Of a DNA stretch of 64,000 nt, positions 32,201 through 63,430 are shown piece by piece (position 1 is the first letter of the stretch; the number at the start of each line of letters is the position of its first letter). Below the pieces are notes generated by a model, which saw nothing but the letters and a program-made list of their open reading frames with translations, made no database searches and had not been told where the DNA came from. Both the position numbers and the translations under genes were made by a program. The DNA comes from Mobula birostris (Eukaryota): NCBI RefSeq assembly GCF_030028105.1, contig NC_092383.1, positions 86,137,921 through 86,201,920 on the forward strand. The letters run 5' to 3'.

Positions 32201-33924
32201 CTCTCTCCATCTACACAACTCCATCTCCCTCTAAGCAAAAGGAAGCTGAAAGTAAAAGCGTCATTCTCGAGGATATGAAGACAATTCAAAAAATGGAGCA
32301 AATGAGGGTGAGAGACAACATGATAGACACTTACAAGATGATCAGAGGCACATATCGAGCAGATATCCAGAGACTTTCCCAGGGAAGAAATGCCTACTAT
32401 GTGGGTGAATAATTTCAAGGTTATTGGAGGAAAGTATTGAGGGGGTTTCAGAGGTATATTCTTAACACAGAGTGGTAGGTCCATGAAAGGCCTTGCCAGG
32501 AGTGATTGCAGAGGCAGATACATTTAAAAAAACTCTTAGATTGGTAAATGGATAATAGGAAAGTTACAGAAGGGAAGGATGAGACTGATCTTAGAGGAGA
32601 GTAAAAGACCCTGTACTCTGGTGTAATGTTCTATCTTCTATATTCCATGAATAGTGGAATCAATCCAGTCCATGACAGGCAAAGGCCACCCCACCAGTCT
32701 TTTGCTTGTGTGTAATCTTTGCATTGATTCTGTTATATTTCTTTGTTCTGCTGTGAATACCCACGTGAAAATGAAACTTAAGGCAGTATATGATGATAAA
32801 CGTACTTTGATAATAAATTTACTTTGAACTTTGAAGTACAGCAGTAATAGAGATGTTGCTTTCAAATCAGATGCCTTCCAACTACTCAAATGCACACAAA
32901 GATCACTCAGTGACGTTTCATTAAGGGAACTCCCAGCTGTAATGGCTACATTCATCCTTGAAGCAACACCAGCCTTCATTTTTTCAGATGACATTTGGGT
33001 GTAAGGATCAGTGGAATCCCTGACTCTGACAGTACAGTCAACCATCCATCTGACAACTCACCAGTGAAGTTGATGTCTGATGGTACCTCACGAGTGAAGA
33101 CAGTCCTTTGCAGGTTTCCCTCCAATCTACAATCGCCTGAAACATCAAGCTCAAATCTCATTGGACAGCCTTCTCTTACAGTATTTCCCGCAGCCCTGAG
33201 AGTTTTTAGTCAAGTTAGGCTCTGAATGATGAGAGTTTGAAAACGGAGAGAAACTCTAATATAGCATGAAGTATGTTGACCATTTTGGCATTTGGCAGAG
33301 CAAACCAAATGCACTGATCAACAAAGTCTCCTTTGTCTGTCCTGCCTGTTATTTGCTCAAATAATTTCAATAGACTTGGGAGGGTAGATTTCTCCTGAAG
33401 GAAACCATGTTGACTTAGGCCTATTTTATCATGTGCCCCCAAGTTTTCCGAAATCCCATCCTTAATAACAGATTCTAAAAACGTACCAACCACTGAAATT
33501 AGACTGATTGATCTATAATTTCCTGATTTTGTCTCCCTCCCCCTATAAAGAGATAAATGACATTTGTAATTTTCCAGTCATCTGGAACCATATTTGAAAA
33601 ATCACTTCTAATGCTTCCACAGTCTCTCCAGCTACTTCGTTCAGAACCTTGGGATGCAGTCCAGATAACTGATCCTATTTCACAATGCTCTCTCAACTAT
33701 TCTGCTCCACTCAGGTTCAATGCAGGGTCTTGACCCAAACCATCAACAGTTCCCTTCCCCCTACAGCTGCTGCTAGTTCTGCTGAGTTCCTCCAGAAATT
33801 TTCTCTTATCTCCAGATTCTGGCATCTTTAGTGTCTACATATATTTATGCACTGTTCCGGGAATGATCAATGACCCCCTAATCAAAGCAGATTATGAAAA
33901 TATCCCACTCTGGTTGTCACCCAC

Positions 33925-36709: not shown

Positions 36710-37395
36710 CTGGGAGACCGTTTCGCTGAACACTTATGCTCAGTTCGCCAGAGAAAGCAAGATCTCCCAGTGGCCACACATTTTAATTCCACGTCCCATT
36801 CCCATTTTGATATGTCTATCTATGGCCTCCTCTACTGTCAAGATGAAGCCACATTCAGGTTGGAGGAATAACACCTTATATTCCGTCTGGGTAGCCTCCA
36901 ACCTGATGGCATGAACATTGACTTCTCTAACTTCCATTAATGCCCCTCCTCTCCTTCACACCCAATCTCCTTATTTATTTAATATATATATACATATATT
37001 TTCTCTCTCTCTTTTTTCTCCCTCTGTCCCTCTCACTGTAGCTCCCTGCCTGCTCTCCACCCTCCAGGCTCCCCTCCCCCCTTCTCTCTCTCCCCAGGCT
37101 TCCCGTCCCATGATCCTCTCTCTTCTCCAGTCTGGTATCCCTTTTGATAATCAACTTTCCAGCTCTTAGATCCACCCCTCCCCTCCCGTCTTCTATCATT
37201 TCGGATCTCCCCCTTCCCCTCCTACTTTCAAATCTCTTACTATCTCTTCTTTCAGTTAGTCCTGACGAAGGGTCCCAGCCTGAAACGTTGACTGTACATC
37301 TTCCTATAGATGCTGCCTGGTCTGCTGTGTTCCACCAGCATTTTTTTTTGTGTGTGTTGCTTGAATTTCCAGCATCTGCAGATTTCCTCATTTCT
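36710..37395 (+). mobile_element. Penelope-like element 3' fragment (GIY-YIG C-terminus + 3' region)
   Basis: LGDRFAEHLCSVRQRKQDLPVATHFNSTSHSHFDMSIYGLLYCQDEATFRLEE*HLIFRLGSLQPDGMNIDFSNFH*. Confidence 0.85.
37257..37294 (+). ncRNA. Minimal type I hammerhead ribozyme motif (GUU triplet)
   Basis: TAGTC-CTGACGA-AGG-GTCCCAG-CCT-GAAAC-GTT-GACTG. Confidence 0.65.
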
Positions 37396-42274: not shown

Positions 42275-42478
42275 CTATTTGGGCCTTGCGGGTTGGCTTT
42301 GAAATTTGATATCTGCATAGGTGTTGTCCTCATCCATAACAGCTCTTGGCTTCCTTTTAAATTTCATGTTTGCATACACAACTCCATTTTCATTGTTAGC
42401 CGACTGGGCAGCTGCCTCATTGTTTTGAACACGGTGTAGATCTGCATAAACAATGTTTTCTTCCAACCTGGCCATTTC
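42275..42478 (-). CDS. Gene A terminal cytoplasmic exon with ITIM motifs
   Basis: Acceptor CATTTCAG|GAA phase 0; EMARLEENIVYADL...VVYANM...NTYADIKFQSQPARPK*. Confidence 0.92.
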   Translation of the reverse strand, partial: EMARLEENIVYADLHRVQNNEAAAQSANNENGVVYANMKFKRKPRAVMDEDNTYADIKFQSQPARPK

Positions 42479-43189
42479 CTGAAATGATAAATAAATTCCA
42501 AGATCTATATTATGTCTGATGAATGTGGAAGGTGAGGGTGTGAAAGGCTACTAGGAGAAGGCAGGATAATAGGGTGAGAAAGAAAATAAATTAGTCATGA
42601 TTTGATGTGCAGAGCAGTCTTGAGGGGCCAAATGGCCTAATTCTGCTCCTATACCTTATGGTCCATGGTTTTGTCCATGGATTTTTAAATTATTTATCTT
42701 ATGTTTATAGCTTCACTTCTGCTCTCATCTGTAAGTAGAAACATGTTCACTACTCTATAAAACAATTGGATACTGTTGCAGACATCTACCAGATCACCTT
42801 CAGTTTTCTGCTTTTAAGTTCATCCCAATCTTTTCAATCAGCTTGTAGAATATAATTTTTCAGAATGTTTGATAACAGTTTATGACTGAGTGGCAGTGAT
42901 CCCTAGTGAGGACCCGCTACTAAATGTACAACATCGGCATGTTGCTTTACAACACCAACACACTAAACTGGTCCAAGGTGTTTCACAGGGATTCAGCAAG
43001 AGAAGAGGTTGAGAATGAAGTTGGGAATTATTTGGGCAAATTACAATACTTTTATGGTTTACAGTCTAAACGGGTTGTCAAAGCAGGTAAATTGATTAGA
43101 TGGGTGTAATTAGGTGGCTCGTGAGCCAGAAGGACCGGCTACTCTGCTGTATCTCTGACGAACAAAAGTTAAGAGGACAGAATTGCAGG

Positions 43190-43315
43190 AATCTCTTACT
43201 AACTCTTCCTTCAGTCAGTCCTGACAAAGGGTCTCGGCCTGAAACGTCGACTGTACCTCTTCCTAGAGATGCTGCCTGGCCTGCTGCGTTCACTAGCAAC
43301 TTTGATTTGTGTTGC
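43190..43315 (+). mobile_element. Penelope-like 3' tip with core-mutated hammerhead (CTGACAA)
   Basis: CAGTC-CTGACAA-AGGGTCTCGGCCT-GAAACGTC-GACTG at 43216-43253. Confidence 0.7.
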
Positions 43316-43825
43316 TAGAATTGCAGGACTTCATGGATTTGTGGGATTTGTCTAGTGTGTGGGATTTGGGCAGCTAAAGCTACTGACATTGGTGGTGGGA
43401 TTCCGAGACTGGAGGATGCACAAGAGGAACACACAGTCCTCTGAGGGTACAGCTCTGAGAGGGAAAGTGATGCAAACAAGGGAAAATGTACGGCAGAGCA
43501 GAATCCTCCAACAATCTCCACCCTGCAGTTACCTTTGGGAATAAGAAAGGCAAATGATAAAATTGAGAAATCAATTGAAACTCTTTGATAATATTGAACC
43601 CAATCATTCAATAAGGAAAAAAAGTTAAATTAATTGGGACATTAGTTAAGGTAATAATACACAAGAAGCATGTTAAAAACTGTGGAAAATATCACAAACA
43701 AAGATTGTTGATAACAGACCTAGGAGACAATAGACTATTCATTCTGGTGCCAGGATTGAGGGGTAGAGTGAGAAAGTGGGGGGGAGGGCCGGGGGTGAGG
43801 TCATCACAGAACTGATATTTACTTA

Positions 43826-44070
43826 TTTAGAGATACAGCATGGAAACAGGCCATTCTGGCCCAACAAGCCTATACTATCCAATTAAACCCATGTGACCAA
43901 ATTAACATACTAACATCTTTAGAATCTGGGATGAAATGGAAATACCCAGAGGAGATCCACACAGTCATAGGGAGAGCATACAAACTCCTTCCAAACAGGA
44001 GCAGAACTGAACCCAAGTCACTGGCGCTGTAATAGCGTTACGCTAACCGCTACCGTACTGTGTCACCCCC
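43826..44070 (-). mobile_element. tRNA-derived V-SINE/HE1-like SINE (also ~44650-44935, 46630-46915, 48560-48700 on minus; 49110-49345, 62125-62330 on plus)
   Basis: Minus-strand tRNA-like head (GGTAGCGGTTAGCGTAACGCTATTACAGCGCCAG..GGGTTCAG), central V-SINE-like region and CR1-like 3' tail. Confidence 0.75.
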
Positions 44071-44512
44071 AATTTATTATTCTGAATAGACCTGCCCTAT
44101 TTTTCTGATTTCACATCAGAGTTTGAGACTTAGAGGGAATATACAAAATGTAAACAGAAAAGTTATTCAACCCAAAGGCAGATTTACACAATTAGGTGTT
44201 CCATCTCCAATTGTAGAGAAAGGACCAGTCTCACTTTTCACCTTTCAGTAACGTAATAAAGACTGAAGCACTTTGAAGGTAAGTCACATAAAATATTATG
44301 GATAGACTGAAGGAAAACTGGATGAGCATGAGAGCAAGGGACAAATAACTGGAAGGATATACTGATGGGATTCAATGAGGGAGTGTTCAGAGGTTTGTGT
44401 AAAATATTAATACTGGACTGGACTAGTGGAGATGAATGATCTGTAAACTCCCATGAAATCCAAATTTTAAATATTCTGAAACATTCAGACAATTTATACT
44501 TCTTGTCCATAC

Positions 44513-44559
44513 CTGGGTATCATCGTTGCCTTCTCTGTGAGTTACGTTGTGCTTGGATT
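44513..44559 (-). CDS. Gene A cytoplasmic exon 1 (E-SKHNVTHREGNDDTQ)
   Basis: 47 nt, TTTTCCAG|AA acceptor, CAG|GTATGG donor, phase 1 in and 0 out, bridging TM exon and ITIM exon. Confidence 0.8.
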
Positions 44560-47436
44560 CTGGAAAATATACCATTATTGCTAAAAATTGCATTGTTGTT
44601 ACAGACATAAACATTTATTTATTCATTTATTGATTGATTGATTGATTGATAGATACAGCACAGAGTTGGCCCTTGCAGCCTTTGAGCTTCGCCACCCCAA
44701 CAACCCCCGACAATCCAGATTAACCCTAACCTAATCTCGGGACAATTTCCATTGACCAATTCACCTACCTGGTACGTCTTTGGACTGTGGGAGGACACTG
44801 GAGGACCCGGAGTGTATCCATGCATCCCACAGGGAGGACATACAGAGACTCCTTTCAGAACGGCACTGGAATTGAACTGCCCCAAGCTGTAATAGCTTCG
44901 CCCAAACTGTTACGTTACCATGACCCCCATACTGAATCTCAGAACCACGGGAACCCAGGCTGCAACACAATAATGATTCTCCACAAAGAGCAAACCTCTG
45001 CTCTGGTTACTGCACAATATTCAGAAAGGATCATGTTGTTTTATACCTCACCTTCTCTGCTACTGCAAACTGACATTTTTTTTTATCTTTGAACATTGTA
45101 ATGAAGAATTCAGATTTGAAATTTCATTTTTCTTTTTATTGCTTCAAATTCTGTCTGATCTACCTACATTTTCTACATTGTCTGTGCATGTTTTTAGATA
45201 ATATTTCTCCTTCACAATATGATGGAACAGGTTACCTGACAATATTCACACTGTCGCATGAACATTTCACTGATCTCCCCAGGACTCTGTGGCAGATTGC
45301 CCCTCGGGAAGAAGGAATAAACTGCCCAAAATAAAAATTACCTCGCTTTCCTACTGGCCACAAAACCTCCTTTCAAATTCAACACTGAGATCAACAATTT
45401 CATATGGAAACCGAATGCCCTATCTTCAATGAATGTTATGTTCGCCTTGATTTGGTTTGCCATTTTATTTCTAGTCACTAGAAATCACTGCTTACTTGTA
45501 AGTTTACAGCAGTTGTTCATTTCTTACTACTGTGTTTCTAAGCAAATGACCTACGACACCGGGTCAGCCATTTTATAATTGCTTGCATATTTACTCATTC
45601 ATTTGTCCAAAAAACTTTGTGACGAGTCAAAGGAATTTTAATCAATAATTGAATCTATCTCTTGTGAAAACATCTAGAAACACTTTTTTTCTCAGCTCTT
45701 GGCTTACTGTAATGTGTTGCTGAATAACAGAATTGCATTCAAACTACAACTACACCTAGACTGGAGTTTACCTATCTGCCTACCTTAAGAAAACGGGGAA
45801 AACTCTTGAGTGAGGGCAGAATAGTGGAAGTGGAATTGTGAACAGATTTTACTTCCCAAATCCTGCTTCCCATTTTTTAATTAATAGTTAACAATAGAAA
45901 GAGAAATGCCAAAGGAAATCAAGAGCAGTACACTCTGTTACTGATGAGGATTATGTCACCAATGAAGATATCAAATTTCAAAGCCTGCCCATCTTTAAGT
46001 CTTCATTTATCCTATTACCACCCACCTTTTGCCTCACACATCATCTTTCCTGACGTATTTTTTCTGTCTTGTACTCCCTCAGAGACCCTCTCTTTTATGC
46101 TTCCTTCCGTACTTCCTCTGCACCTCAGGACTTGCTATCGCTCATATCTTCCTGTTTTGATGTAGGTCATTGCCTTGAAGGATCAGCTGTTCCTCTCTCC
46201 ACAGCTGCTATCTGACATGCTGAGCATTCCTAGCACTTTCCTGCCTATACCTCAGGTATTGATCATTTAGGGAATTTCTCTTTGGAAAAGAATGCATTCC
46301 TTTTGTTCAGATCGTTGCAATAAACAGTGACTTGTGGACAATACTACGCTGAAAGTAACTGTCTGGTTTGTTGGGGGGAGAGAGAGAGAGAGGCCAGGAA
46401 CTAAATCATGGGGAGCAGTTGAATTATTAGTTGTCTTCATTTTCATCCAGTGAGTTATATTCCATCAGCCAGTGAGTTGGAGGCTCTAGGGGCTTTATTT
46501 TCCAGTGATCAACTCCATTTCCCCATCTGATAATAACACTGAGATAGATGATCACTGTACTCACAGTTCTCTTCAATGGTTTACAAAGTCTACTTAAGGG
46601 ATACAAGATTATTTATTTATTTATTTATTATTTATTTATATTTCGCAGAGTAAGCCCATCTGGCCCTTTGTGCCTCGCTGACCCAGTGACCCCGACAAGC
46701 CTGATTAAACTTAATCCAATCATGGAACAATTTACAATGACCAAATAACTCTCTTTGGAGAGTGGGAGGAAACTGGAGGACCCAGGGACACATTCAATGG
46801 GCTGGACACAGAGACTCTGTACAGAACAACATCGGAATTGAACTCCGATCTCCAAAAAGCCCCAAGGAGTAACAGTGTGGCGCTAACCTCTACGCTACCA
46901 TGGTGCCCATCTCAGGATCATCTCAGCAAAGCAGACCCGTGATTTAATCTACAGCAACCAATGAGAGCAGGGTACTTTGTCCAGTGATATATGGTGAACG
47001 GTAGATAGGTGAAAGATACACCTGATTTTTTTTTGAGAATGACATGAGAGAATGATTTTACACATACATTGTCCAAATGATTGCTTTTAATTTGGAAGTT
47101 GTACTGAGGAACAGGTTATTGAATACACTTTCAAATACAACAGCTAATTCCCCAAAACTGAGTACAACAGTGAGACCACCTAAATCTTTCTTCAACCCAG
47201 CCTCTTGGTTCTCTGCCATTCCACACCTGAGGTGAGATTCCATCACCTGATGTTTCAGGAATAATGGAGTCACCAGGTTACAGTGGAAGCAACACGATTT
47301 TATCATGTGTTGTAAACCAACAAATTGGCACTCTAATCCTGGCTTTTTGTTGACTGCAACGAAATCAAGTTCTTTAAAGTTCAGCTGCTAGTTATCATAT
47401 TCATCATGAAATAATTAAAGGAAAAAAGAAACCTAC

Positions 47437-47519
47437 CCCTCCTTTTTCTCTTCAGGTAGTAAAGTACACAAACGACAAGTAGTATGAGAAGAATTCCAAC
47501 AACACTTATGTAAGTGGGC
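47437..47519 (-). CDS. Gene A transmembrane exon (M-PTYISVVGILLILLVVCVLYYLKRKRR)
   Basis: 83 nt, TACCACAG|G acceptor, G|GTAGGT donor, phase 2 in and 1 out; hydrophobic stretch with basic stop-transfer KRKRR. Confidence 0.9.
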
Positions 47520-48205
47520 CTGTGGTAAAGAATAAGAAAGTGTCAGTCCTGGTTTCAAACTTATTCTTGGCCATTTGTAAGGTCTGACATTTACACAGCA
47601 TTTTTCATGAGTTCAGGTTGTCTACAGATCAGAAATGATTGTTAGACACTGTTGACAGTGTGGGAAATTGCAATAGCAAATCTGCTCACAGCAAGGTCTC
47701 ACAAGTAGAAATGTGACCATGACCAATGATAGTGATGTTGGTTAAAGAGTAACTATTGTCCAGGCCATTTGGGATCCCTCACATGTTCTTTTACAAACAT
47801 TTCATTGGAACTGTTACATTAAAAGGATTGATTGGTGGTTTCTTCTCTGACAGACAGCGTTGCTGACCATGTAGCTGAACCTCTTCTTTGAACAGTTTCC
47901 ATGGTTTTCTTTGTTTCGTGGCTGTCTGGACTCTTGTTTGGCTGGGACGAGTCAGGCTGAAGGGCCTGTTGTTCTAATATACAACAATGACTTTAGTACT
48001 CAGAATATTTCGAGTAAGAAAATTATCTTTGATCTCAGGCTTGACACCTGTACAACAAAATTAGTTTCCAACACGTCATTTCATTGAAGTTAATCATGTC
48101 AAATGTTTCTAATACCAGTTAAAGAGAGACAAATTTCTCTCCCAACTGGCTCTATTTGGAAGGAGTAGCAGTGAAACCAGCCGTAGAGGGAAATTTATAC
48201 TTTAC

Positions 48206-48284
48206 ATTTTATGTGACGTAGGTTCTCCCCCTTGTGCACTTGTTGTAGATTCTGTCACAGTATTTTCACAGAAATGGATTGGCC
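48206..48284 (-). CDS. Gene A stalk exon (G-PIHFCENTVTESTTSAQGGEPTSHK)
   Basis: 79 nt, TTTTAACAG|GG acceptor, AT|GTAAAG donor, phase 1 in and 2 out matching neighbours; Thr/Ser-rich. Confidence 0.8.
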
Positions 48285-49784
48285 CTGTTAAAAGAAAATC
48301 AAATGACATTTTATCTGCTTTGTACTTGCAAAAACAAGACAGCACAATTGTTGGACCAATGGGTACTTGAGCATGGTGGACCAAAGTTGATCTGTTATCC
48401 AATACACATTTAAAGATTAAAGATGAGATTTATTTGTCACATGTTCATCAGATCACACAGTGAAGTGCATCGTTAGCAATGACAACCAATATAGAATATT
48501 TTCTGGGGGAAGCCTGCAAGTGTCCCATGCTTCCAGCACCAAAATGGCTTGCCTATGAATTACTAATACTTGCCCGTGTGCCTTTGGAATGTGAGAGGAA
48601 ATCAGAGCACGCAGAGGAAACCCACACAGTCACTGGGAGAGTGCACAAACAACTTGCAACAGTGGTGGGAATTGGGCCCCGGTCACTGATCGCTGGTGTT
48701 GTAATGGTGTTATGCTTATTGCTGTTCTCCTGAGCAACCAGTTGCATTCACTGACAATTTGGATTCTTTCCCGTATTTAGGCACTGGTGGTGTGGAGATG
48801 CTGCTGGGGACTTGGACTGAGGGAACTGTAATCCCAATCATAAGGGAAATTTCCAGCCAGGGAGCTGGCCTCTGCCAGCCATGGGGAGACCTCTTTCTGG
48901 GGCCCCATCACCCTCTGCAGGGGCGTGGTCATAACTGCTTGAGTATTCAGGCAGATAATGGTTCAAGTACACTTTTTATCCAACAGGATAATGCAGGATG
49001 TTTTCTCAATGAAAAGGCCATATACAGAAAATCAATGTACCCTGGTTGCCATGGTACCGAAGCAGCTAGAGTAATGCAATTACAGTTCCGGGCATTCCGA
49101 AGTTTGGAGCTCAATTCTGACGCTGCTCTATAAGGAGCCTCTGTATGTCCTCCCTGTGGAATGTGTGAGTTTTCTCAGGGTCCTCCGGTTTCTTTCCAGA
49201 ATCCAAAGACGACCGAGTAAAGTAATTGGACAGTGTAAATTGTCCCATGATTAGGTTAGGGTTAATTGGGTTTGGTAGGGGTTGCTGGGGCAGCATGACT
49301 CAAAGAGCTGGAAGGGCCTACACCATGCTCTATTGCTAAATAAATGAAATGATGGAACCTCACTTCAGGTGTAGAGTGGCAGAAAACTAAGAGGATGGGT
49401 AGAAGAAAGATTGAGATGGTCTCACCTGTTGTACTCATTTCGGGGCAATGAGCTTTTGAATTTGAAAGTATATTCAATAAGCTGTTCCTCAGTACAAACT
49501 CCAATTAAATGCAATCATTTGTACAATGTGTGTGTAAAATATATGTCTGGCTTTCTGTGTTTGCCCTAGTGACAGAAACCTCGACCATTCTGAGAAGTTG
49601 TCATAAAATCCTGGCAACAATTTTCTCTACATATAATTTTGCTGATTCTCTTGCTGGTGAGAGAGTTTCCACCCCTCCAGTGAACACTCAGAGATTTGAA
49701 TAAAGCTTTTCATTTTTGAAACATTTGTTCAAACTGCACAGAGTTACAGACTTAAGTACAATAACAAAATGATTATCAATATTC

Positions 49785-52330
49785 TGTCATAAGGAGGTGG
49801 CTGGGAATGGACCCAAGTGCAAGACACAGACACTGAAGTACTAGGGACAGGACTAGGATAAGAGAGCTAGGATCCCGGTCTTGGACTCCGAGCCAGAGAC
49901 TGGACAAGGACCCAGTACCTGGGTCTTGCCTCTGGTTCGGACCCCAGGACTAGGCAAGGACGAGGCTTGGCAGGCAGGACGAGGCTGGAAACTTCAGGCG
50001 AGAGGCGAGAGGCGAGAGACTTGGCTTGGCAAGAGGCTAGAGACTTGGCTTGGTAGGAGGCTAGAGGCTAGAGGCTAGAGACTTGGCTTGGCAAGAGGCT
50101 AGAGGCTTGCGACTTGGCTTGGCTAGAGGCTAGAAGCTAGAGACTCAGCTTGGCTTGGCTAGAGGCTAGAGACTCGGCTTGGCTAGAGGCTAGAGGCTAG
50201 AGACTTGGCTTGATTAGAGGCTAGAGGCTAGAGACTTGGCTTGGCTAGAGGCTAGAGACTTGGCTTGGCCAGAGACTAGAGACTTGGCTTGACTCGAGAC
50301 TCGCGACTAGAGACTAGAGACTAGAGACCAGAGGCTTGGCTTGGCTTGGCAAGGGGTTAGGCAGGAGGCTGGAGTCTTCAGGCTTGAGCTAGAGGCTAGA
50401 GGCTAGAGACTTGGCTTGGCAAGAGGCTAGAGGCTAGAGGCTAGGCTTGGCAAGAGGCTAGAGGCTAGAGACGGCTTGGCTAGAGGCTAGAGACTTGGCT
50501 TGGCTAGAGGTTAGAGGCTAGAGGCTAGGCTTGGCTAGAGGCTAGAGGATTGGCAAGAGGCTAGAGGCTAGAGACTTGGCTTGGCTTGGGAAGAGGCTAG
50601 AGGCTAGAGACGTGGCTTCGCTAGGGGCTAGAGGCTTGGCTTGGCAAGGGGCTAGACACTTGGCTTGGCAAGAGGCTAGAGGCTAGAGGCTTGGCTTGGC
50701 AAGGGGCTAGGCAGGAGGCTGGAGTCTTCAGGCTAGCGGCTGGGCAGGAGGCTGGAGTCTTCAGGCTAGCGGCTGGGCAGGAGGCTGGAGTCTTCAGGCT
50801 AGCGGCTGGGCAGGAGGCTGGAGTCTTCAGGCTAGCGGCTGGGCAGGAGGCTGGAGTCTTCAGGCTAGCGGCTGGGCAGGAGGCTGGAGTCTTCAGGCTA
50901 GCGGCTGGGCAGGAGGCTGGAGTCTTCAGGCTAGCGGCTGGGCAGGAGGCTGGAGTCTTCAGGCTAGCGGCTGGGCAGGAGGCTGGAGTCTTCAGGCGAG
51001 GCGAGGCCGGAGGCTGGAGTCTTCAGGCTAGCGGCTGGGCAGGAGGCTGGAGTCTTCAGGCGAGGCGAGGCCGGAGGCAGGAGACTTGAGGTAAGGCTGG
51101 AGGCTGGAGGCAGGAGATTTGAGGTGAGGCGAGGCAGGAGGCAGGAGACTTGAGAGGAGAGGCCGGAGGCAGGAGAATTGAGGCAAGGTGAGGCTGGAGG
51201 CAGGATGCAGGAGACTTGAGGCGAGGCGAGGCTGGAGGCTGGAGGCAGGAGGCAGGAGACTTGAGGTGAGGCTGGAGGCTGGAGGCAGGAGACTTGAGGC
51301 GAGGCGAGGCTGGAGGCAGGAGATTTGAGGATAGGTGAGGATGGAGGCAGGAGACTTGAGGTGAGGTGAGGCTGGAGGCAGGAGACGAGGAGAGGCGAGG
51401 CCGGAGGCAAGAGGCAGGAAACTTGAGGTGAATCGAGGCTGGAGGCAATAGACGAGGAGAGGCGAGGCTGGAGGCAGGAGACTTGAGGAGAGGCGAGATT
51501 GGAGGCAGGAGACTTGAGGAGAGGCGAGGCGAGGCTGGAGGCTGGAGGCAGGAGACTTGAGGCGAGGCTGGAGGCTGGAGGCAGGAGACTTCAAGAGAGG
51601 TGAGGCTGGAGGTAGGAGACTTGAGGTGAGGTGAGGCGAGGCTGGAGGCAGGAGACTTGAGGAGAGGCGAGGCGAAGCCGGAGGCTGGAGGCAGGAGACT
51701 TGAGGCGAGGCTGGAGGCTGGAGGCAGGAGACTTGAGGTGAGGCGAGGCTGGAGGCAGGAGACTTGTGAGGAGGCGAGGTTTGGCAGGGCGCGGTACTCC
51801 TGGGCAGGGTGCGGATAACCACCCGACAGAGGTAAGGGACAGGAAGGGATATAACCAACCCCAGGTAACAGCAAGACAGCCCGGTTTACCTGGGCGGAGG
51901 CAAGGGAAAGGAAGGGACGGAACCAACTCCAGGTAACGGCAAGACAGCCTGGTTTACCTGGGTGGAGGCAAGGGACAGGAAGGGAGCGAGGTCCAGGGTG
52001 GCTCTAGGACAAGACTACCGGCAAGACAAGGCAAGGCTTCTGGCAAACCAAGACGAGACAAGAACTTCAGGCGGGACGAGAGTTACCGGTAAGAAAAGGC
52101 AAGGCTTCAGGCAAGGAAACAGAAGGCAGAGAAAGGGATACAAGGAGTAAGGACAAGAACAATCCAGCAGCCACGCCTGGGTCTCTGAAGGTATTTATGC
52201 AGCCAGCCCCAATGAGCATCAGCTGCCTCAATTAGCTCAACAGGAACAGAAACAGGGTAGATAGGAAAATCTGGAGCAAGGGTCGATGAACTGGACCGTG
52301 AAACGGAATACGGACTTCACAAACATGACA
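49785..52330 (-). mobile_element. Solo-LTR-like element expanded by minisatellites
   Basis: TGTCAT...CATGACA termini; 5-bp TSD TATTC (49780-49784, 52331-52335); same family ends as 17612-18799. Confidence 0.88.
49990..51775 (+). repeat. Three consecutive G-rich tandem arrays inside LTR
   Basis: AGAGGCT/GACTTGGCTTGG mosaic (~49990-50700); 33-bp GGCTGGAGTCTTCAGGCTAGCGGCTGGGCAGGA array (~50715-51060); GAGGCAGGAGACTTGAGG-based array (~51070-51775). Confidence 0.93.
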
Positions 52331-52645
52331 TATTCTCCTGGAATTGTCCCCATTCTGGACCCTGCAGCCTGTGAAACATCCTTTTCAACATGAACTCCAT
52401 CCATCCCTCAGGGAATATTTCATGCATTAAAGAGATCCCCTTCGAGCTTTTAAGACCATCAAGCAGGACTTTCAAAAGAAGTTTGTGAATCTATTAGATC
52501 CAAGGAAATGTATCATGTTCAGCAAAAGCTGCAAAGCTGAATATTAGTAAACAACAGGAATTCTGCAGATGCTGGAAATTCAAGCAACACACATCAAAGT
52601 TGCTGGTGAACGCAACAGGACAGGCAGCATCTGTAGGAAGAGGTG

Positions 52646-52683
52646 CAGTCGACGTTTCAGGCCGAGACCCTTCGTCAGGACTA
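52646..52683 (-). ncRNA. Minimal type I hammerhead ribozyme motif, intact (left arm)
   Basis: Minus strand TAGTC-CTGACGA-AGGGTCTCGGCCT-GAAAC-GTC-GACTG. Confidence 0.7.
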
Positions 52684-53464
52684 ACTGAAGGAAGAGTGAG
52701 TAAGGGATTTGAAAGTTGGAGGGGGAGGGGGAGATCCAAAATGATAGGAGAAGACAGGAGGGGGAGGGATGGAGCCAAGAGCTGGACAGGTGATAGGCAA
52801 AAGGGGATACGAGAGGATCATGGGACAGGAGGTCCGGGAAGAAAGACAGGGGGGGGGGCCCAGAGGATGGGCAAGAGCTATATTCAGAGGGACAGAGGGA
52901 GAAAAAGGAGAGTGAGAGAAAGAATGTGTGCATAAAAATAAGTAACAGATGGGGTACGAGGGGGAGGTGGGGCCTTAGCGGAAGTTAGAGAAGTCGATGT
53001 TCATGCCATCAGGTTGGAGGCTACCCAGACGGAATATAAGGTGTTGTTCCTCCAACCTGAGTGTGGCTTCATCTTTACAGTAGGGGAGGTTGGAGGAACA
53101 ACACCTTATATTCCGTCTGGGTAGCCTCCAACCTGATGGCATGAACATCGACTTCTCTAACTTCCGCTAAGGCCCCACCTCCCCCTCGTACCTCATCTGT
53201 TACTTATTTTTATGCACACATTCTTTCTCTCACTCTCCTTTTTCTCCCTCTGTCCCTCTGAATATACCTCTTGCCCATCCTCTGGGTCCCCTTCCCCCTT
53301 GTCTTTCTTCCCGGACCTCCTGTCCCATGATCCTCTCGTATCCCCTTTTGCCTATCACCTGTCCAGCTCTTGGCTCCATCCCTCCCCCTCCTGTCTTCTC
53401 CTATCATTTTGGATCTCCCCCTCCCCCTCCAACTTTCAAATCCCTTACTCACTCTTCCTTCAGT

Positions 53465-53502
53465 TAGTCCTGACGAAGGGTCTCGGCCTGAAACGTCGAC
53501 TG
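53465..53502 (+). ncRNA. Minimal type I hammerhead ribozyme motif, intact (right arm)
   Basis: TAGTC-CTGACGA-AGGGTCTCGGCCT-GAAAC-GTC-GACTG. Confidence 0.7.
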
Positions 53503-56487
53503 CACCTCTTCCTAGAGATGCTGCCTGGCCTGCTGCGTTCACCAGCAATTTTAAGCTGAATATTAGAAATAGTTTAGAATTCAAAACAAAACAAAGAAAT
53601 TGATTAAATCATTGAAAATTCAGAACGTGAGCAGGTTTGTAGGGAACATATATACTTATGTGAAACCTTCAATAGGTACATGGAGAGATGAGGAATTAAA
53701 ACAAATATATATAGGATAGCTAACAGACAGAAATGGGGGAATTTATAGTGGGCACAAAGAAATCCAAGACCAATTCAATACATTGGTTTTGCCATTTGTC
53801 CTTCCTCATCACGTTTCTTAATACCAGTGTCAGGCTAATTGCTCAATCATTTCCTCTTTTCTCTCTATCTCCTTTTTTAAAATAGAGTGGTTAGCTTCCC
53901 CCCAGTCCATTGAAATTAGAAATGGCCAGTAATTTTTTTCTTGTCCCAACTTTCTAAGTTCTCCTGGACGTAGAATATTAGAACCTGGAGATTTCTGGGA
54001 GAGTAACTGTTTCCCATATCTTTTGATCTCTCTACCTCTGAGAAAAATAACTCAATCTTTCTTAAATACAGATTCACCACTTTCTGGGAGAATAGACCTT
54101 TCCTAATCTCAGTCTTAAATGACTCACCCATTGTATTATTCTCAGAGTCCGGAAACTGTCCTGTATTCCCTGACATTGGAAGCATCCAACCTGAATCTGC
54201 ATCTAAAATATTGCAGATTTTTATGCGATCACCTCTCAGCCTTCTAAACTGCAGCAAATGAAAACCTCTTCAACTAAATCTCTGATCTTTTGTCACTTGT
54301 GACATTCCAGAAATCAGTCTGCTGGTCCTTTGCTCACCTCCGTCCAAAACAAGAACATCTTTCATTGGACCAAAATTGCACAGAATACTGGTGGCCTGAT
54401 ACCAATTTTAGTGCTGGGCCAGATTGGAAATATCTGGTACGGACCTAATTGAGGCATTAGGTCCTGGGCATGAGAGCATATCGAAGCATCAGGGCCACGT
54501 GTCAGAGAGCAAGGAACGATCGGCTCACCTATAACAGGAACATATTTCATTGGACCAAATCTGCACACAATTCTAGTAGCCGAGAGGGAGGAACAAGTTG
54601 GTGTCTCACTGATTTAACCTTTGGGCCAGGTCGAATCGAGTCAGCAGGTTCCGAGCACATAAGCGCATCGAATGGCAGGGCCTGAGTGTGAGTGAGAGGA
54701 ACGACGCTCTGGTTGGCCGACTTAAGCACAGGGCCAGATTTAAAAGTTCAGGCTGTCAGGGCTGGACAAGAGGGACGGGCTGATGTGAGGCTAACTACTC
54801 CGCAAAGTTTACTCATCCCTGCGCTGAGCTGAAGCTGTGGCCTGCAACAGACAGGCTCCGAGATTGCCAGTGAATGGCTTCATAGCTGGGGACTCACTTG
54901 TATGAACTTCAGTTCTGAATGTTATTTGCTTACAATTATTGTTTGATTGATTTGTTTATTTTTGGCACATTGGGTGTTTGATGGTCTTTTTTTGATAGGT
55001 TCTATTGGGTTTCTTTGTGTTTGGCTGCCAGTAAAGAGACAAGTTTCAAGGTTGTGTATGGTATACATACTTCGATAAAAAATGTTACTTGGAACTTTGT
55101 TCCCAACTGATAAAGGCCTTGTTTCATTGTAGTGTTTCATGCTTTTTCCTTTACTTGAATCTTCTCTCTGAAAGTCCAAATATAATTTGCATTCTTTATG
55201 CCCTGCTGCATCTGCATGTTTACCTTCAGTGAAAGATGTACAAGGACATCCAAAACTCATTACATTTCTCGCTTTTCTATTTTATTGCCATCCAGGTAAT
55301 TATCTACATTCCTGTTATTGCCACAGTCTAAGCAATACTAATTTTTTTGTCCATGTATTTTCAATTCGCTGAACAGGGGAAATAAGACAATCCAAGCCCC
55401 AGTGGTTGAGTGGTTGAGTTGTTCCAGTATAACCCTACCCTCTTCAATAATGTTTTTATCCTTGAAACTGCTCAGCATAGAATTCACTTGAGCTCCATCT
55501 TTCTACACTTTTGCTTGGAGACTCAATGAACTAGGATGCATAGTTTTTTGAGGTCATATCTCACAATTCCACCTGCGGGGAAAAGGTATGTTGGCTTTCA
55601 GGACACAGACATTCACAATCCATGTGATTTCTGTACTTTTCATCAAGATACAACTGCTTTGATTTGATGACTCAGCCCATTTGCTATAAAATGCAGCACA
55701 GATAATTGTATATAAATTCAGGCAGAACAAATATGGATAAAAGTCCACATGGAACGCTGCCACGAGAAATCAGCATCCATCATCATGGACTGCTACCATC
55801 CAGGCCATGCTTTCTTCACGCTGCTGTCATTGGGAAGGAGGTGTCACAGCACCAGGGTCAGAAACAGTTATTACCCTTCAACCATCAGGATACTGAACCA
55901 ACATGGATAACTTCATTCATTTCAACACTGAACTGGTTCTGCAACCAATGGACTCACTTTCAAGGACTCTACAACTTACATTTTCAGTATTTTTTATTAA
56001 TTTACTTATTGATAATTTGTTTCTTTTATATTTGCACAGGTTGTCTTCTTTTGGTTGTTTGTCCATCTTTGATTATGTGTAATTTTTCATTGATTCTATT
56101 GTATTTATTTGTATCTACTGTGAATGCCTGCGAGAAAATGGATCTCAGGGTAGAATATGAAGACATATATGTACATTGATGATAAATTTACTTTGAACAT
56201 TGAAGTGGTTTATCTTAGAAGGATTATGTTAATTAATGGCTAGAAATATTACCAGATGAGACACATTCACACCCAGCCAGTGACAGCAGATCATAGGCAG
56301 GAGACAGTGTGGTGAGCGACTCACGTTTAAACTGCTGTGCTGAAAGGTTTTTCATTCTCTGAAAGGTGGTGACAACATACACTCCATGATCCTGAGTGAA
56401 GTTCCAACAACACAATATCCAGCACACATCAGTCATTCAGTTGTACTCCATCAACCATCACAAAGAATCAAACCCTGCACCACTTAC

Positions 56488-56808
56488 CCGTGCTGTTGAC
56501 TTCAATCACATTTCTGCAGGTGCTGACACTGTTGGAGATGGACACATTGACCATTTCACTGGACTTTGTTCCATTAACATTTGAGGCTTTGCAATAATAG
56601 AGATCTTTTTTGTATTTTAATGGTTGGCAATGTAGATCCAGTGTATTGTTATCGGAGATCTTTGAATCCGCAGATGGGGTCCTTTCGTACCATGAGTACT
56701 GAATGGGAAGGGATCCATGGACAGACTCACAGGACACTGACACGGAGTTCCCACAACTTGAGCCACTTGTTGGTGGAGAAAATTGAAGCAAAGGAACAGA
56801 CACAGGTT
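56488..56808 (-). CDS. Gene A exon: membrane-proximal C2/I-type Ig domain
   Basis: 321 nt open, TTCCACAG|AA acceptor, G|GTAAGT donor, phase 1/1; SVSVSCESVHGSLPIQYSWY...LYYCKASNVNG. Confidence 0.9.
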
Positions 56809-59219
56809 CTGTGGAAAACAATCAGTAAACATCTGAAAATCAAACACAGTAAAGATTTCAGCAGTTCTGTATCTCAACCAGAACCCACAAGTTTGGAATC
56901 TCAGCAGCTCATCTGCTCCATTGTGTCTCTGCATCTTCCCATCTGTCTGAACTTCCATGTCTGTCAGTATCGCCGGAGACAGAAGGATTCCTGATCAGAA
57001 CAACAGTGGTGACACTGAGAATGTGTCAGTGTGATAATCTGGGATTCAGTCTCTCTCAGCCCCAAGGAGACAGTCGTAAGTGAGAGCAAACATTGTGACT
57101 TTGCAATGGCAATACTTGTGTGTGTCCTAGAAAACTCACCATAATTTGAAAGCAGGAAATTGTCAGATACGTACAAGATGAATGGTGACTTTAAGGAGAA
57201 AGTATAATTGTGATTTGATTTCAGTGACCTACAGCAGCAAGGGAACCCATTAGTAATGATAGCTGTATGAAGACAACAAGGAATGATGTGAGATCATAGA
57301 CCATAATACCATGAAACATAGGAGCAGAATTAGGCCATTCTGTCCATTGACTCTGCTCCACGATTCCATCATGGCGGATTTATTATCGTTCTAAATCTAT
57401 TCTCCGGCCTTCTTCCTGTATCCTTTGATGCTCTTACTAATCAAGAGCCTATGAAATTCCATTTTAAATATACCCAATGACTTAACCTCCACAGCTGCCT
57501 GTCACAATGAATTCCACAGATTTTTTTTTAGATTATGCGAACACTCTGTCCTCCTTTATTGTCATTTAGAAATGCATACATGCATTAAGAAATGACACAA
57601 TGTTTCTCCGGAGTGATATCACAGAAAACAGGACAAACCAAAGACTAACACTGACAGAACCACATAATTATAACATATAGTTACAGCAGTGCAAAGCAAT
57701 ACCATAATTTGATGAAGAACAAACCATGGGCACGGTAAATAAAATCTCAAAAGTCCCCGAGTCAATTGACTCCCGGGTCCCCAATAGCAGACGGCAAAAG
57801 AGAGAAACTCCCTGCCATAAACCTCCAGGCACCGTCAACTTGCCGATGCCTTGGAAGCAGCCGACACTGAGTCCATCCATCCAAAAACTTCGAGCTTCCG
57901 ACCAGCCTCGGGCCTTCTGCTCCAGAGATTCTGGTTACCATACAGTAACAGCGGCAGCGAAGCGGGCAATTCAGAAGTTTTCCAGATGTTCCTCTGTACT
58001 CTCATGTCCGTCTCAATCAAATCAGAATTGTGCACGGTCCCCTACTTAACAGATAACAGACATCACCATCGAAGTGGTTGCGCGTGCTGCTGTCGCGCCG
58101 CCATCTTATCCTTCTCATTAGTAAAGGCTTCATCTCCCTCTGGCTGAAGAAGTTCCTCCTCATGTCTCTTTTAAAGGGACATCCTTCCATTCTGAGTCTG
58201 TGCTTTCTGGTCCTAGATGCCCACACTGTAGGGAACCTCTCTTCACATCCACTGGGGTTTGCAATGCTCGATAGCTTTCAATAAAATCCACCCTCATTCT
58301 TCTAAACTCCAGCACGCACAGGCCCAAAGCCTTCAAATGATGCTCATACATTCAGGGAGTTTAACATCACCTGGAATTTAACAGATGGATCCCTTTAGAA
58401 TTGATATACGGAGAGTTCTTGGGAAACAAGTCCATTGCTCCCTGAAAGTGGCAACACAAGTGGACATAATGGTAATGAAAGCATTCAGCACCTTTGCCTT
58501 CTTTACTCTACATGTTGGAGGGTGAAGCTGACTGGGCATCTTGTAGCTTCATAAAACACTGATTAGGTTACATTAGGAACATAATATGTTTTTCTGGTTG
58601 CAACACTATAGGAAGGATGTTGTCATTTTTCAGCCTATTTTTCAATCTATTGTAGATCTCTCTGCAAGCCATGATTGCCCCCCTGACTGTGCAATACACA
58701 CACAATCTTGGTGTCATCTGCAAATTTGCTGATTCATTTTACCACATTATCATCCGGATCACTGATACAGATGCAAACAACAACAGACCCAGCACCAATC
58801 CCTGCGCTAAGCATCATTGTTGCTAAATATATTTTAATTATGTTTGCCAGCGCCCCAGTAATTTCTGTACTTACCTCCCGTGAGGTCCGAGATAACACGT
58901 TAGCAGGCCTTGGGGATATATTCACACTGACTTGCCTCAGGAAAGCAAACACCTCCTCCTTTAACAGGGTGACGTCTCATGGAGTTCAGAAGCAGGAAAA
59001 TATACTGAGCCTTCCATTGGAAACCAGTATCCCAACAGTGGATCAGAACTCACAGTGGATGAGAGTATTATGAGCGAGGTCTCCCCATCTTTGCACACTC
59101 GCCACAGGGTTCTGCATGCTGTGGAGCCTCCGGATATTCCTGCTGTCCTGACTCTTCCCAGAGAAAACCTGAATCAGACATTTCGGTGGAGACAACAAAT
59201 CAATCAATGAGAAACCTAC

Positions 59220-59534
59220 CATCAGATACTTGGAGATGCACATCAAACACTGGATCATTGCCAGAGGTTGTAATTCCACATCTGTAAGGTCCTGTATCAT
59301 TAGAGACAAGATTCTCCATAGTAACAGTAAATATTCCCTGGGATGTGTTATCTCTGATTGTCATTCTTCCATACTGCTCACTTGTCCCATTTGTATTCAC
59401 TAACGATGTGCATTGGTGATCCCACATGCGGCACAAATACTTTGTGTGTGAACGGTACTTTGGTGCATAGTGACAATCGATTGTGACCGCTCTTCCCACA
59501 ACTCCTCTTACTTCATCTTCTGCCCATAAAGCAC
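59220..59534 (-). CDS. Gene A exon: V-type Ig domain (paralog of 8524-8838)
   Basis: 315 nt open, TTTCAG|GT acceptor, G|GTAGGT donor; ALWAEDEVRGVVGRAVTIDCHY..KYLCRMWDHQC..DTGPYRCG. Confidence 0.92.
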
Positions 59535-61806
59535 CTGAAACTGAGGGAGAAAATCTTCAGAAAATGGACAGGTAAAATCAAATTTACACAAGCAGGCTCA
59601 AGTTTCAAGATTATTTAATGTTATTTCCTGTACGAACGTGTAAACTGGAATTAAATCGTTGTTATGCTGGATCTAAATGCAGCAGAAAAAAACACAAAAG
59701 ATAATGAATACAATTAAAATAGCTAAAGATGTTTTATTTACAACTGACACTGTGTTACAAGGAATCTGCCACAGTGTCAATTGATATAAATAAATTCCTC
59801 ACAGACAGAGAAGACAATAACATCGTCCCTCCTCACGTGCTCCCAGCTCTTCACAAGTAGCAATTTTTATTTGATTGGAGTCATCATTGTCACTGCCCAC
59901 TAATGTCTCAGTGTGTTTCCATATTTCTGAGTCAATAGATTACTGATCCAGTCCCACTCCTGGCAGGTGAGCCCAAGATCAGTGGGGGGTAACTTACTGG
60001 AGGCAGGATCGACCTGAATTTGCAAAGGCAAGATCTGATTTGGGATAGTCAACATGATCTTGTGCATTGGAAATCCTCCCCCAAAACTATTTGACTGAGT
60101 TTTTTTTGAGAGACGATGAAAGGACAGGACCTTAGAGATTAGCAATTTTTGTTTAGCAAGGTTTATGACCATACCTTGCATAGCAGACTGATCTGTAATG
60201 TGAGATCACATGGTAAGCTACCTGGATGGATATTGAATAGGCTTGGTGGAAGGATACAGACTGTGGTAGTGGAGTGTTGGTTTTCTGACAACATCAGACT
60301 TTATCACCAGCAATGTGCCATCAGGATCGTTGCTGTTATTTGTTAACCACTCTTATTGTCATCAATATTAATAATCTGGAATGAAACTGTAGGTGGCATG
60401 ATTAATAAGTTATGGGTGAGACAGCAGTGTGGTGGACAGTGGCAAGAGTTGTGTAAGTTTACACGAGGATCTTGAAAATGAGCCGGTGTTCAGCCCCATT
60501 ATTCTGTGCCAGCAAGCTGCCCCCTCCCCACCTGAGCCTGTATTGTCTGTTTGCATTTGACCTGTCTCCCTCTCTTCTTGGTCCAACTATCAGGTGGAAG
60601 GTGCAGGAGCCTTGGAGCCCACACCACAGGGTTCGTCAACAGTTGTTGTCCTGCAGCTATCAGGCTCCTGGATTGGTTTCACTCGCCTCAGCACTGAACT
60701 GACTCCGCAGCTGTGGACTCACTTTCAGAGACTCTGCCTCTCATGTTCTATGTATTATTTGTTTACATAGTTTTATTATTTGCACGATTCATCATCGCTT
60801 GCACATTGGTTTTTTGTCAGTCTTTGTTGTGTGTGGTTTTACATGGATTCTATTGTGTTACTTTGTTTTGTGGGCAAAGGTATGGTGGATAATCACAGTC
60901 TTTATCCCAGGGTGGGGGAGTTGAAAACTAGAGACCCTCGGCTTAAGGAGTGAGGGAAAATTCTTAGAGAGCCCGGAGCAGCCGTGTTTTACACACACAG
61001 CCGTGTGTGCATGGAAAAGGCTGTCAGAGGAAGTACTAGAGATGGTTACAAATACACTATTTAAAATACATTTGGACAAGTTCATATATAGGCAAGTTTT
61101 AGAAGGATACGAGACAAATGCAGTGAAATGGGAGAAGCTCAGGAAGACACTGTGGTCAGCACGGATGATTTGGGGTGAAACTCCTGCGTCCATAACCTAT
61201 AACTCCCTGACTCTGCAGCATCCTCTCTAAACTGGAACATGCTTTTAAAAGGATAAATTCAGAATTCTATTTCATTGCATAGATGTGACAGCTCATGGGA
61301 TCACAGCCTATCAGATTGCACTTCAATCTCAACAATCAAAGTTCAAAGTATACTTATTATCAAAGAATCTATACTATATACAACCTTGAGATTCACCTCC
61401 TTCCAGGCAATCACAAAAAAATAGAACATCCCAATATACAGAAAAAAGAGCAAATCAAAGTAAGCAAATAACATTTGGAACTGAAATTCACAAAACTGAG
61501 GCCACAGCCAAGAAGCCAGTCATCACTGTAGTCAATTCATGAGGCCATTAATTGCCAACCACAGCCTCAGTTCAGCGTAAAGACACGTAAACCTTCTGTG
61601 CAGCAAGCTGAACACCAGCCATCCCTCACCTTGGACTGACATTCCTTTAGTGATTAAAAGGGAATTGAAGGTTTATTATCCTTGTTGTAATCATGAAATG
61701 CAGCAGCCTTGTTCATAGAAGGAATGGATTTCCTTCTCATGTCTCAAAGCGAGTGAGGTTTTTTATTTAACAAACAAAAACCCAATTTCAGCGGTTAGTA
61801 ATTTAC

Positions 61807-61830
61807 CTGGGATGCTCAGATATTCAAAAG
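61807..61830 (-). CDS. Gene A 24-nt micro-exon (A-FEYLSIP-G)
   Basis: GTCTCTAG|CT acceptor, CAG|GTAAAT donor, phase 1/1; conserved with 11106-11129. Confidence 0.65.
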
Positions 61831-63109
61831 CTAGAGACAACCAAAGACAATGAGACCATTAGACATAGGAGGAGAATTAGGCCATTTGGCCTATACAGTC
61901 TGCTCCACTATTCCATCAAGGCTGACTTATTATCCCACTCAATTCCATCCTTGGCATTTCTCCCCATAATCTTTTGATGCCTTTCCTAAACAAGAAACTA
62001 TTAAGTACGCTTTAAATATACTCAAATGTCTTGGCCTCAAAAGCCATGTATGGTATTGAATTCCACAGATTCAACACCCTCTGGCTACAGAAATTCCTCC
62101 TCATCTCTGTTCTAATGTACGGAGTCTGCACATCCTCCATGTGGAATGTATGGGGTCTCCCCGAGTGGTCCTGTTTCCTCCCACAGTCCAAAGACATACT
62201 CATTAGGATAACTGCTCTTTGCAGATTGCCCTGTGATTATGTTACAGTTAATTGGGTTTGTCGAGAGTTCGATCGGTGTTGTGACCCAAAGGGCTGGAAG
62301 GGCCTATTCTGTACTCTATCGGTAAATAAATAAAATAAAGGGATGCCCTTGCATTCTGAGGCTGATTTTTCAGGATGATTTCCCCATAAGGAAACCACTT
62401 TTGATCATATACCTCCAAATACCCCAAAATCCTGTTCTTAATAATAGACTCCCACATCTTCACAACCACTAAAGTCAGGCTAACTGGTTGACAATTTCCT
62501 TCCTTTCGCCTCCCTCCTTTCTTAAAGAGTGTGGTGATACTTCCAATTTTCCAATCCTTTGAACATTTCAGTCTAATTATTCTTGAAAGATCACCACTAA
62601 TGCCTTCATGATTTCTTTAAATAACTCTTTCAGAAACTTGGGATGTAGTACATCTGGTCCAAATGACTCATCTACTTTCAGATCCCTCAGCTTCTCAAGC
62701 ACGTTTTGCTTAGTAATAGCAACAACACTCATCTCTGCCCCTGCCATTGCCAAATTTCTGTCATTCCCACTAATATTTGCAATATTATAAGTCCTTCCTT
62801 TTGCTTTTATGAGAATCAGAAGTCGATACCAGTCTGGACTTTTCAATGTGAAGCCAGAAGTATTAATGGAATGCTCTCAATTTGTCGAGATGCGCAAGTC
62901 CAACTATGTTTGAGATGCTCCATATCTTCCAGGAGCAAGTGACAGACTTAACTGTTCACTGCACTTTAGTTCTACCCCATGGATGCTGCAATGTGCAGCT
63001 TCTACAAATGCAAAGAAATTCCTTACCCTCACTAGAGGTATAAGAGCAGCAGTAACAGAGTAACAAAAAGAAATATTTAAATGTATCCTCCCTTGAAATT
63101 AGAACTTAC

Positions 63110-63430
63110 CGCTGCCATTGATTTCTGTCACGTAACTGCAGATATCTCCGTTGTTGAAGACTGTCGCATTAACCATTGCACTGGATCTCGCTCCAAGCCG
63201 ATTTGAGGCACTGCAGTAATATTGCTGGTGTGTGTGCTTGAAGGATTGACAATGCAGAGTCAGCTCATTGGTATCTGAGATCTTCGGATACCCAGATGAG
63301 GTTTGTTCATACCATCTGTATTGAATGGGAAGGGATCCCTGGAAGGACTCACAGGAAAGTGACACTGAGCCCCCGAGACATGAGACATTTGCTGGTGACA
63401 GATATCGAATCACAGGAACAGACACGAGTT
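63110..63430 (-). CDS. Gene A exon: C2/I-type Ig domain (paralog of 14569-14889)
   Basis: 321 nt open, CCCACAG|AA acceptor, G|GTAAGT donor, phase 1/1. Confidence 0.92.

Follow-up and report, generated by a model that had tools for sequence, protein, structure and literature searches.

What kind of receptor is encoded by the immunoglobulin (Ig) exons that lie on the minus strand of a 64,000-nucleotide (nt) stretch of the Mobula birostris genome (NC_092383.1), and in which direction would it signal? This stretch, hereafter the window, contains no runs of N, and its numbering is used throughout. Three V-type and three C2-type Ig exons were found on its minus strand, with Pfam assigning V-set to the V exons (E 1e-11 to 4e-9) and Ig_3 to the C2 exons. 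They are divided between two genes, here called gene A (42275-63430) and gene B. Our analysis indicates that the segment 42275-63430 very probably represents the last seven coding exons of gene A, a type I membrane receptor of the modular domain immune-type receptor (MDIR) family and presumably the inhibitory half of a paired system.

Exon structure and full-length protein of gene A

Eight stretches of gene A carry an AG acceptor behind a pyrimidine tract as well as a GT donor (8/8), and the intron phases across them are 1,1,1,1,2,1,0. Spliced without a 24-nt micro-exon, the other seven are 100% identical to residues 121-578 of the Mobula birostris RefSeq protein XP_072134916.1. The initial annotation had proposed eight exons with matching phases; the sites and phases are indeed present and seven exons agree exactly with RefSeq, but the 24-nt "linker" is unsupported, as discussed below.

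The distal C2 exon, C2a (63430-63110, minus strand as for all gene A exons; 321 nt, phase 1 in and 1 out; Ig_3 E 5.5e-8), is 100% identical to residues 121-227 of the RefSeq protein. It is followed by the candidate micro-exon (61830-61807; 24 nt, phase 1 in and 1 out, AG/GT sites), by the proximal V exon, V2 (59540-59220; 321 nt, V-set E 1.3e-11), and by the membrane-proximal C2 exon, C2b (56808-56488; 321 nt), where Pfam Ig_3 and Ig_C17orf99 each score under their curated cut-off. The stalk exon (48284-48206; 79 nt, phase 1 in and 2 out; GPIHFCENTVTESTTSAQGGEPTSHK) matches residues 441-468 with 100% identity. The transmembrane (TM) exon (47519-47437; 83 nt, phase 2 in and 1 out) encodes an uncharged TM segment and then KRKRR. 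This segment, PTYISVVGILLILLVVCVLYYL, has no charged residue according to both a hydropathy scan and the sequence itself, as the initial annotation had stated, and AlphaFold2 (AF2) models a helix at residues 471-498. The cytoplasmic part is encoded by a first exon, cyt1 (44559-44513; 47 nt, phase 1 in and 0 out; ESKHNVTHREGNDDTQ), which is colinear with the stingray protein described below, and by the last coding exon, or tail exon (42478-42275; 204 nt), which ends with the stop codon TAG. By pattern search, the first AATAAA 3' of this stop was found at 41707-41702 on the minus strand, a candidate poly(A) signal implying a 3' untranslated region of ~570 nt.

XP_072134916.1 is RefSeq isoform X1 (578 aa) of a protein named "polymeric immunoglobulin receptor-like", isoform X2 being XP_072134917.1 (576 aa). 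The two isoforms differ by two residues (EINGSVSGALW in X1, EINGSGALW in X2) because of a tandem acceptor at the V2 exon (59534-59540, minus strand; cag/TTTCAG/GT), the second AG of which (59534) lies 6 nt downstream. The coding sequence of gene A spans 23,673 bp in GCA_030028105.1, which therefore places its ATG ~1.9 kb past the window end. The full protein consists of leader-V-C2-V-C2-stalk-TM-tail, with a stalk of 26 residues and a tail of 88 residues. Gene A had been predicted from the window to encode leader-V-C2-V-C2-TM followed by an immunoreceptor tyrosine-based inhibitory motif (ITIM), with the leader and first V domain expected beyond position 64000. The RefSeq protein has both parts, and the same layout is seen in XP_072134916.1 and in the colinear stingray protein. 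Gene A is already annotated in RefSeq, under the misleading name "pIgR-like".

Relatives of gene A and membership in the MDIR family

Cannon et al. 2006 (Immunogenetics 58:362) are said to have described MDIRs with four ectodomain subfamilies and one to six Ig domains. A full HMMER scan with the V exon returned 2669 relatives, the closest of which are multi-domain proteins of rays, skates and sharks. V and C2 domains are mixed in 23 of 150 representative relatives, and all 20 names checked among these are elasmobranch. The one all-V protein checked among the 150 representatives is a bichir pIgR-like protein, and bony-fish pIgR-like matches are all-V. A wider search also recovered a chimaera protein, from Callorhinchus milii, with the order V-C2-TM-V-C2-TM. 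The Hemitrygon akajei protein XP_072886821.1 (597 aa) is colinear with gene A at 78% identity, with each exon junction in place.

The best stingray protein was used as a proxy query in a follow-up search, which also retrieved gene A itself. Many paralogues per species were found, together with the clearnose skate (Raja/Rostroraja eglanteria) proteins MDIR3 (ABC86797.1; E 1.4e-234, 98% coverage), MDIR5 (ABC86800.1; E 8.2e-173) and MDIR2 (ABC86796.1; E 1.9e-106). Gene A and MDIR3 share 52.6% identity over 454 aa. We parsed the MDIRs and relatives with hidden Markov models derived from the V and C2 exons of the window itself. According to this parse, MDIR3 is V-V-C2-V-C2-TM with three ITIMs, MDIR5 is V-C2-V-C2-TM with an arginine in the TM and a short tail, and MDIR2 is V-C2-TM-ITIM. 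The presence of these three proteins among the relatives and the Mobula RefSeq match agree with the cartilaginous-fish origin and the MDIR link suggested initially. Whether the architecture had been described before, left undecided at that stage, can now be answered: the V-C2-V-C2 ectodomain occurs in MDIR5 and the combination V-V-C2-V-C2-TM-ITIM in MDIR3.

The domain-wise phylogeny that had been proposed as a check was run. In the V tree, chondrichthyan V domains form one group, apart from the V domains of bony-fish pIgR-like and CLM proteins (Shimodaira-Hasegawa-like approximate likelihood ratio test support, 89). In the batoid domain trees, V and C2 domains each split into a distal and a proximal type, giving four separate subtypes that recur in skate MDIRs; position-specific V and C2 subtypes are common to gene A and these receptors. 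A passage of the carp SITR paper (PMC3031540) presents MDIRs as multigenic activating and inhibitory receptors resembling CD300, TREM, FCAR and pIgR. The features expected of the family are found here: a sequence relationship to skate MDIRs, a modular ectodomain with a variable number of domains, and ITIM-tailed as well as charged-TM forms within one multigene family. As judged by sequence, gene A is a member of the MDIR family of cartilaginous fishes.

Paralogues with an arginine-containing transmembrane segment

The manta paralogue XP_072134926.1 (505 aa) has its own arginine-containing TM. Its identity to gene A is 98% over leader and V1, 97% over C2a and 92% over V2, then 79% over C2b, 50% over the stalk and 13% over TM and tail. 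Such a gradient is the usual mark of paired inhibitory and activating receptors, and points to gene A and XP_072134926.1 as members of a predicted pair.

Gene B, the second receptor gene of the window, corresponds to XP_072134915.1 (820 aa), which has seven Ig domains. Its leader exon (21959-21923, minus strand) reads MWISILLISFLP and then phase 1, ends at a GT donor and matches residues 1-12 of this protein at 100%. The V1 exon (16014-15694, minus strand; Pfam V-set) is 100% identical to residues 13-119. The C2 exon (14889-14569, minus strand) is 100% identical to residues 120-226, with 95% nucleotide identity to gene A C2a, and the V2 exon (8844-8524, minus strand) is included in the XP_072134915.1 model. 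Past the window start, gene B continues with C2-V-C2-V, an arginine-containing TM and a short tail. When gene A is compared with gene B, dN/dS is ~1.0 for the V2 exons (18 non-synonymous and 5 synonymous changes; small counts) and 0.29 for the C2a exons (likewise small counts).

Gene B had served as the guide to the missing 5' part of gene A. The leader-V-C2-V order taken from it agrees with RefSeq gene A; however, gene B is a gene in its own right, with seven domains and an arginine-containing TM, and the "linker" included in that order is unsupported. The seven-domain RefSeq model with its arginine-containing TM also rules out gene B as a mere mirror of the gene A 5' half. With this TM and short tail, gene B looks activating.

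Cytoplasmic tail and predicted signalling

Three tyrosine motifs were located in the tail of gene A, all on the minus strand. IVYADL (42454-42437) fits the ITIM consensus (S/I/V/L)xYxx(I/V/L), VVYANM (42382-42365) is non-canonical with M at +3, and NTYADI (42325-42308) is non-canonical with N at -2. Of the three motifs listed in the initial annotation, IVYADL was thus correctly called a canonical ITIM; VVYANM and TYADI are present but neither is canonical. TYADI was also considered as an ITIM or as an immunoreceptor tyrosine-based switch motif, which is excluded by N at -2 and T at -1. The two sequence hallmarks of an ITIM receptor, IVYADL and an uncharged TM, are found in gene A.

Homologues of the TM and tail occur in 63 chondrichthyan proteins (sharks, skates and rays), MDIR2 and MDIR3 among them, and the three tyrosine positions recur. 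The first (Y1, IVYADL in gene A) is kept in rays and sharks and is degenerate in skates. At the second (Y2), YA is nearly invariant, with V or L at +3 in most of the 63 homologues; a group of paralogues from Mobula, Hypanus and Hemitrygon has M there instead (YANM or YVNM). The third (Y3, NTYADI) is conserved in rays, with N at -2. The Pfam family SIT (SHP2-interacting adaptor) matched TM and Y1 with 33.2 bits, against a cut-off of 27.6, which may be taken as an indirect hint at SHP recruitment.

A mechanism can be proposed from these features. The ectodomain of gene A would bind a ligand, probably via the distal V domain, and clustering beside an activating receptor would lead Src-family kinases to phosphorylate IVYADL. 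The phosphorylated motif would then recruit SHP-1, SHP-2 or SHIP and damp the neighbouring signal from an immunoreceptor tyrosine-based activation motif (ITAM), while YANM and NTYADI may, as in CD300f, provide extra docking sites of Grb2/PI3K type or for further phosphatases. Gene A would thereby act as the inhibitory half of a pair, its activating partners carrying a TM arginine for an adaptor. We infer this inhibitory mechanism from the class of the motif.

The second motif could also give gene A a less one-sided role, namely a dual function similar to that of CD300f, in which the ITIM is balanced by a YxNM site recruiting Grb2 or PI3K p85 and the net effect varies with context. VVYANM conforms to both the pYxN (Grb2) and the pYxxM (p85) consensus, and IVYADL is the only motif of the tail that fits the ITIM consensus. 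Since paralogues from Mobula, Hypanus and Hemitrygon retain M at +3, YANM looks like a conserved variant and not like one-off decay. By contrast, V or L at this position makes the motif a canonical ITIM in skates, in sharks and in other paralogues of rays. We regard a receptor that is not purely inhibitory as possible, although improbable, and retain the inhibitory receptor as the preferred reading.

Ig domain types and the question of Ig binding

Sequence searches of the V exon against solved structures gave pIgR as the strongest summed match (E down to 3.6e-50) and, as single-domain matches, CD300f/CLM-1 and CD300a (E 1e-17 to 1e-15). In the full-length AF2 model, the V domains are confident (predicted local distance difference test, pLDDT, 75-90). 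A Foldseek search with them ranked pIgR first, the best single-domain match being mouse CD300lf (1zox; template modelling score 0.91, root-mean-square deviation 1.8 A, 38% identity). The gene A V domain also has the extra C-C' disulfide pattern (KY[WL]C...C) and two disulfides of CD300 type. The C2 exon (C2b) matched FcRL5 in sequence (E 3e-35 over 6 stretches) and, weakly, FcRL4. The V domains are accordingly classified as CD300/pIgR-type and the C2 domains as FcRL5-type, the latter by sequence alone.

The last cysteine of C2b and a cysteine of the stalk form a C-x14-C spacing over the exon junction (CRNVIEVNSTGPIHFC; 56488-56500 and 48260-48284, minus strand). The first of these cysteines is conserved in at least 90% of 141 C2 domains. 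Any pairing of the C2b and stalk cysteines is tentative, since C2a has the same cysteine with no stalk partner.

The RefSeq name and the types of the domains raise the question of whether gene A could be a polymeric-Ig or Fc receptor with ray IgM as its ligand, functionally equivalent to pIgR, Fc alpha/mu R or FcRL. Its V domains are closest to pIgR and CD300 and its C2 domains to FcRL5, an Ig-binding receptor. Yet pIgR has only tandem V-like domains, as opposed to the alternating V and C2 domains of gene A, and the best single-domain fold match is CD300lf. An ITIM-type tail is common to gene A, MDIR2 and MDIR3, and the large paired multigene family with arginine-TM partners is typical of CD300/KIR-like innate receptors. 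An Ig-binding role of this kind is therefore considered unlikely. The same low standing is given to its extension to the whole family, in which MDIRs would be the long-sought Fc or polymeric-Ig receptors of cartilaginous fishes, gene A being inhibitory for ray IgM/IgW and XP_072134926.1 its activating counterpart. That extension is suggested because pIgR/CD300-type V and FcRL-type C2 domains both come from Ig-binding receptor families; if true, paired Fc-receptor signalling would have originated at the base of the jawed vertebrates.

Several points weigh against our assignment of gene A as an inhibitory MDIR receptor. A canonical ITIM is found at only one of its three tyrosine motifs, and the stingray relative has three. 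Exon use and expression of gene A are based on a computed RefSeq model and on homology. The C2 domains are poorly modelled in the full-length AF2 prediction (pLDDT ~30), and a separate C2-plus-stalk model (141 sequences, pLDDT 75) gave only weak generic beta-sandwich matches in Foldseek (Ig/FnIII, E around 1e-3, including CD22 and JAM), which is why the FcRL-type label of C2 is confined to the sequence level.

The 24-nt micro-exon

The micro-exon at 61830-61807 keeps the reading frame and has good splice sites. It is absent from RefSeq isoforms X1 and X2 of gene A and from the RefSeq model of gene B, which joins C2 straight to V, and none of the 8 C2-to-V junctions recovered by pattern among the 150 representative relatives carries an insert. 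The 3.2-kb block around it shows 84% identity between the two genes, and the two copies of the micro-exon differ at 3 of 24 nt, a divergence similar to that of the block. The micro-exon was judged unsupported because it is missing from the RefSeq models and from the relatives' junctions and because its divergence is close to the block background. As a constitutive exon, the "linker" is ruled out by both RefSeq isoforms, the gene B model and the eight junctions.

The good splice sites of the micro-exon, and a read-through that soon reaches a stop and AATAAA, would suit a gene A whose exons do not yield one membrane receptor, being silent or decaying or producing a short secreted V-C2 form by read-through after the micro-exon, but this is very unlikely given that each of the seven exons is open, is bounded by canonical sites and agrees exactly with the RefSeq model, that order and tail are kept in orthologue-like proteins of stingrays, sawfish, skates and sharks, that gene A and gene B exons are 93-95% identical compared with 84% for introns, and that the insert is missing from those eight C2-to-V junctions.

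A dispersed repeat (...GGCCAAATGGCCTAATTCTCCTC...) is present at 11138-11289, 57292-57452, 42582-42672 and 36250-36459. In both genes a copy stops within a few bases of the micro-exon acceptor, on its upstream side, so that the pyrimidine tract of this acceptor may derive from the repeat end.

Exon relics and repeats in the window

An inverted relic of a tail exon lies at 45904-45984 on the plus strand, inside the TM-to-cyt1 intron of gene A. Its translation, KCQRKSRAVHSVTDEDYVTNEDIKFQS, shares 74% identity with the stingray tail, and the tyrosine of the third motif is replaced (YVTNEDI). Two decayed V-exon relics (VRGVVGKVI.IDC...), at 20690-20844 and 32043-32251 on the minus strand, have a frameshift and stops in common; the former is in the leader-to-V1 intron of gene B and the latter in the space separating the two genes. 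Both appear to descend from a single dead exon that was copied along in a segmental duplication of ~11.4 kb.

The 8.2-kb C2b-to-stalk intron of gene A contains a G-rich minisatellite of ~1.8 kb (49996-51780) with units of 31-66 nt. The bin 50001-52000 has a GC content of 61% and a GC skew of 0.45, and long spurious open reading frames occur there on both strands. An inverted-repeat element is located at 52534-53566, with copies at 11781-12304, 31722-31929 and 36826-37388, several of them 80-95% identical. One copy sits in the C2-to-V2 intron of gene B.

Significance and comparison with known receptor systems

Gene A adds little to what is known of these receptors, because its model is already in RefSeq and the modular V/C2 family was published in 2006. 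The present work links the RefSeq models of the manta with the name MDIR. It also brings out a clear inhibitory/activating pair, as predicted from an identity that falls steadily from 98% (V1) to 13% (TM and tail), and a YANM variant of the second tail motif that is conserved in three myliobatiform genera.

Among the systems compared, pIgR is the top summed match to the V domains of gene A in both sequence and fold, but it has V-like domains only, whereas gene A alternates V and C2. pIgR has two to five tandem V-like domains and a transcytosis tail without ITIM, binds polymeric Ig and J chain, and does not belong to a multigene family of paired receptors. FcRL5 and other FcRL proteins share with gene A the C2 sequence match and ITIM-type tails. 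Unlike gene A, they have no CD300-type V domains, the FcRL ectodomain being of C2/I type only. CD300 is similar in its two-disulfide V domain and in the fold match of CD300lf; it differs in having a single V and no C2, compared with the four Ig domains of gene A, two of which are C2-type and interleaved. The CD300 family also pairs inhibitory ITIM forms with charged-TM forms, and CD300f combines ITIMs with YxxM and YxN sites.

The closest parallels are found within cartilaginous fishes, where RefSeq models of rays, skates and sharks go by the names "pIgR-like" or "FcRL5-like". The Hemitrygon akajei protein XP_072886821.1 has the same nine-part architecture as gene A, but with three canonical ITIMs and a longer C-terminus. 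MDIR3 has the C-terminal V-C2-V-C2-stalk, an uncharged TM and a homologous tail with three tyrosines, and differs by an additional N-terminal V. Its motif 1 is degenerate while motifs 2 and 3 are canonical ITIMs, the reverse of gene A, where motif 1 is canonical and motifs 2 and 3 are not. MDIR2 has a homologous ITIM-type tail but just two Ig domains. MDIR5 has the V-C2-V-C2 ectodomain, whereas its arginine-containing TM and short tail resemble those of gene B and XP_072134926.1. As the ectodomain order of gene A is that of MDIR5 and its TM/tail module that of MDIR2 and MDIR3, gene A represents one more combination of known modules.

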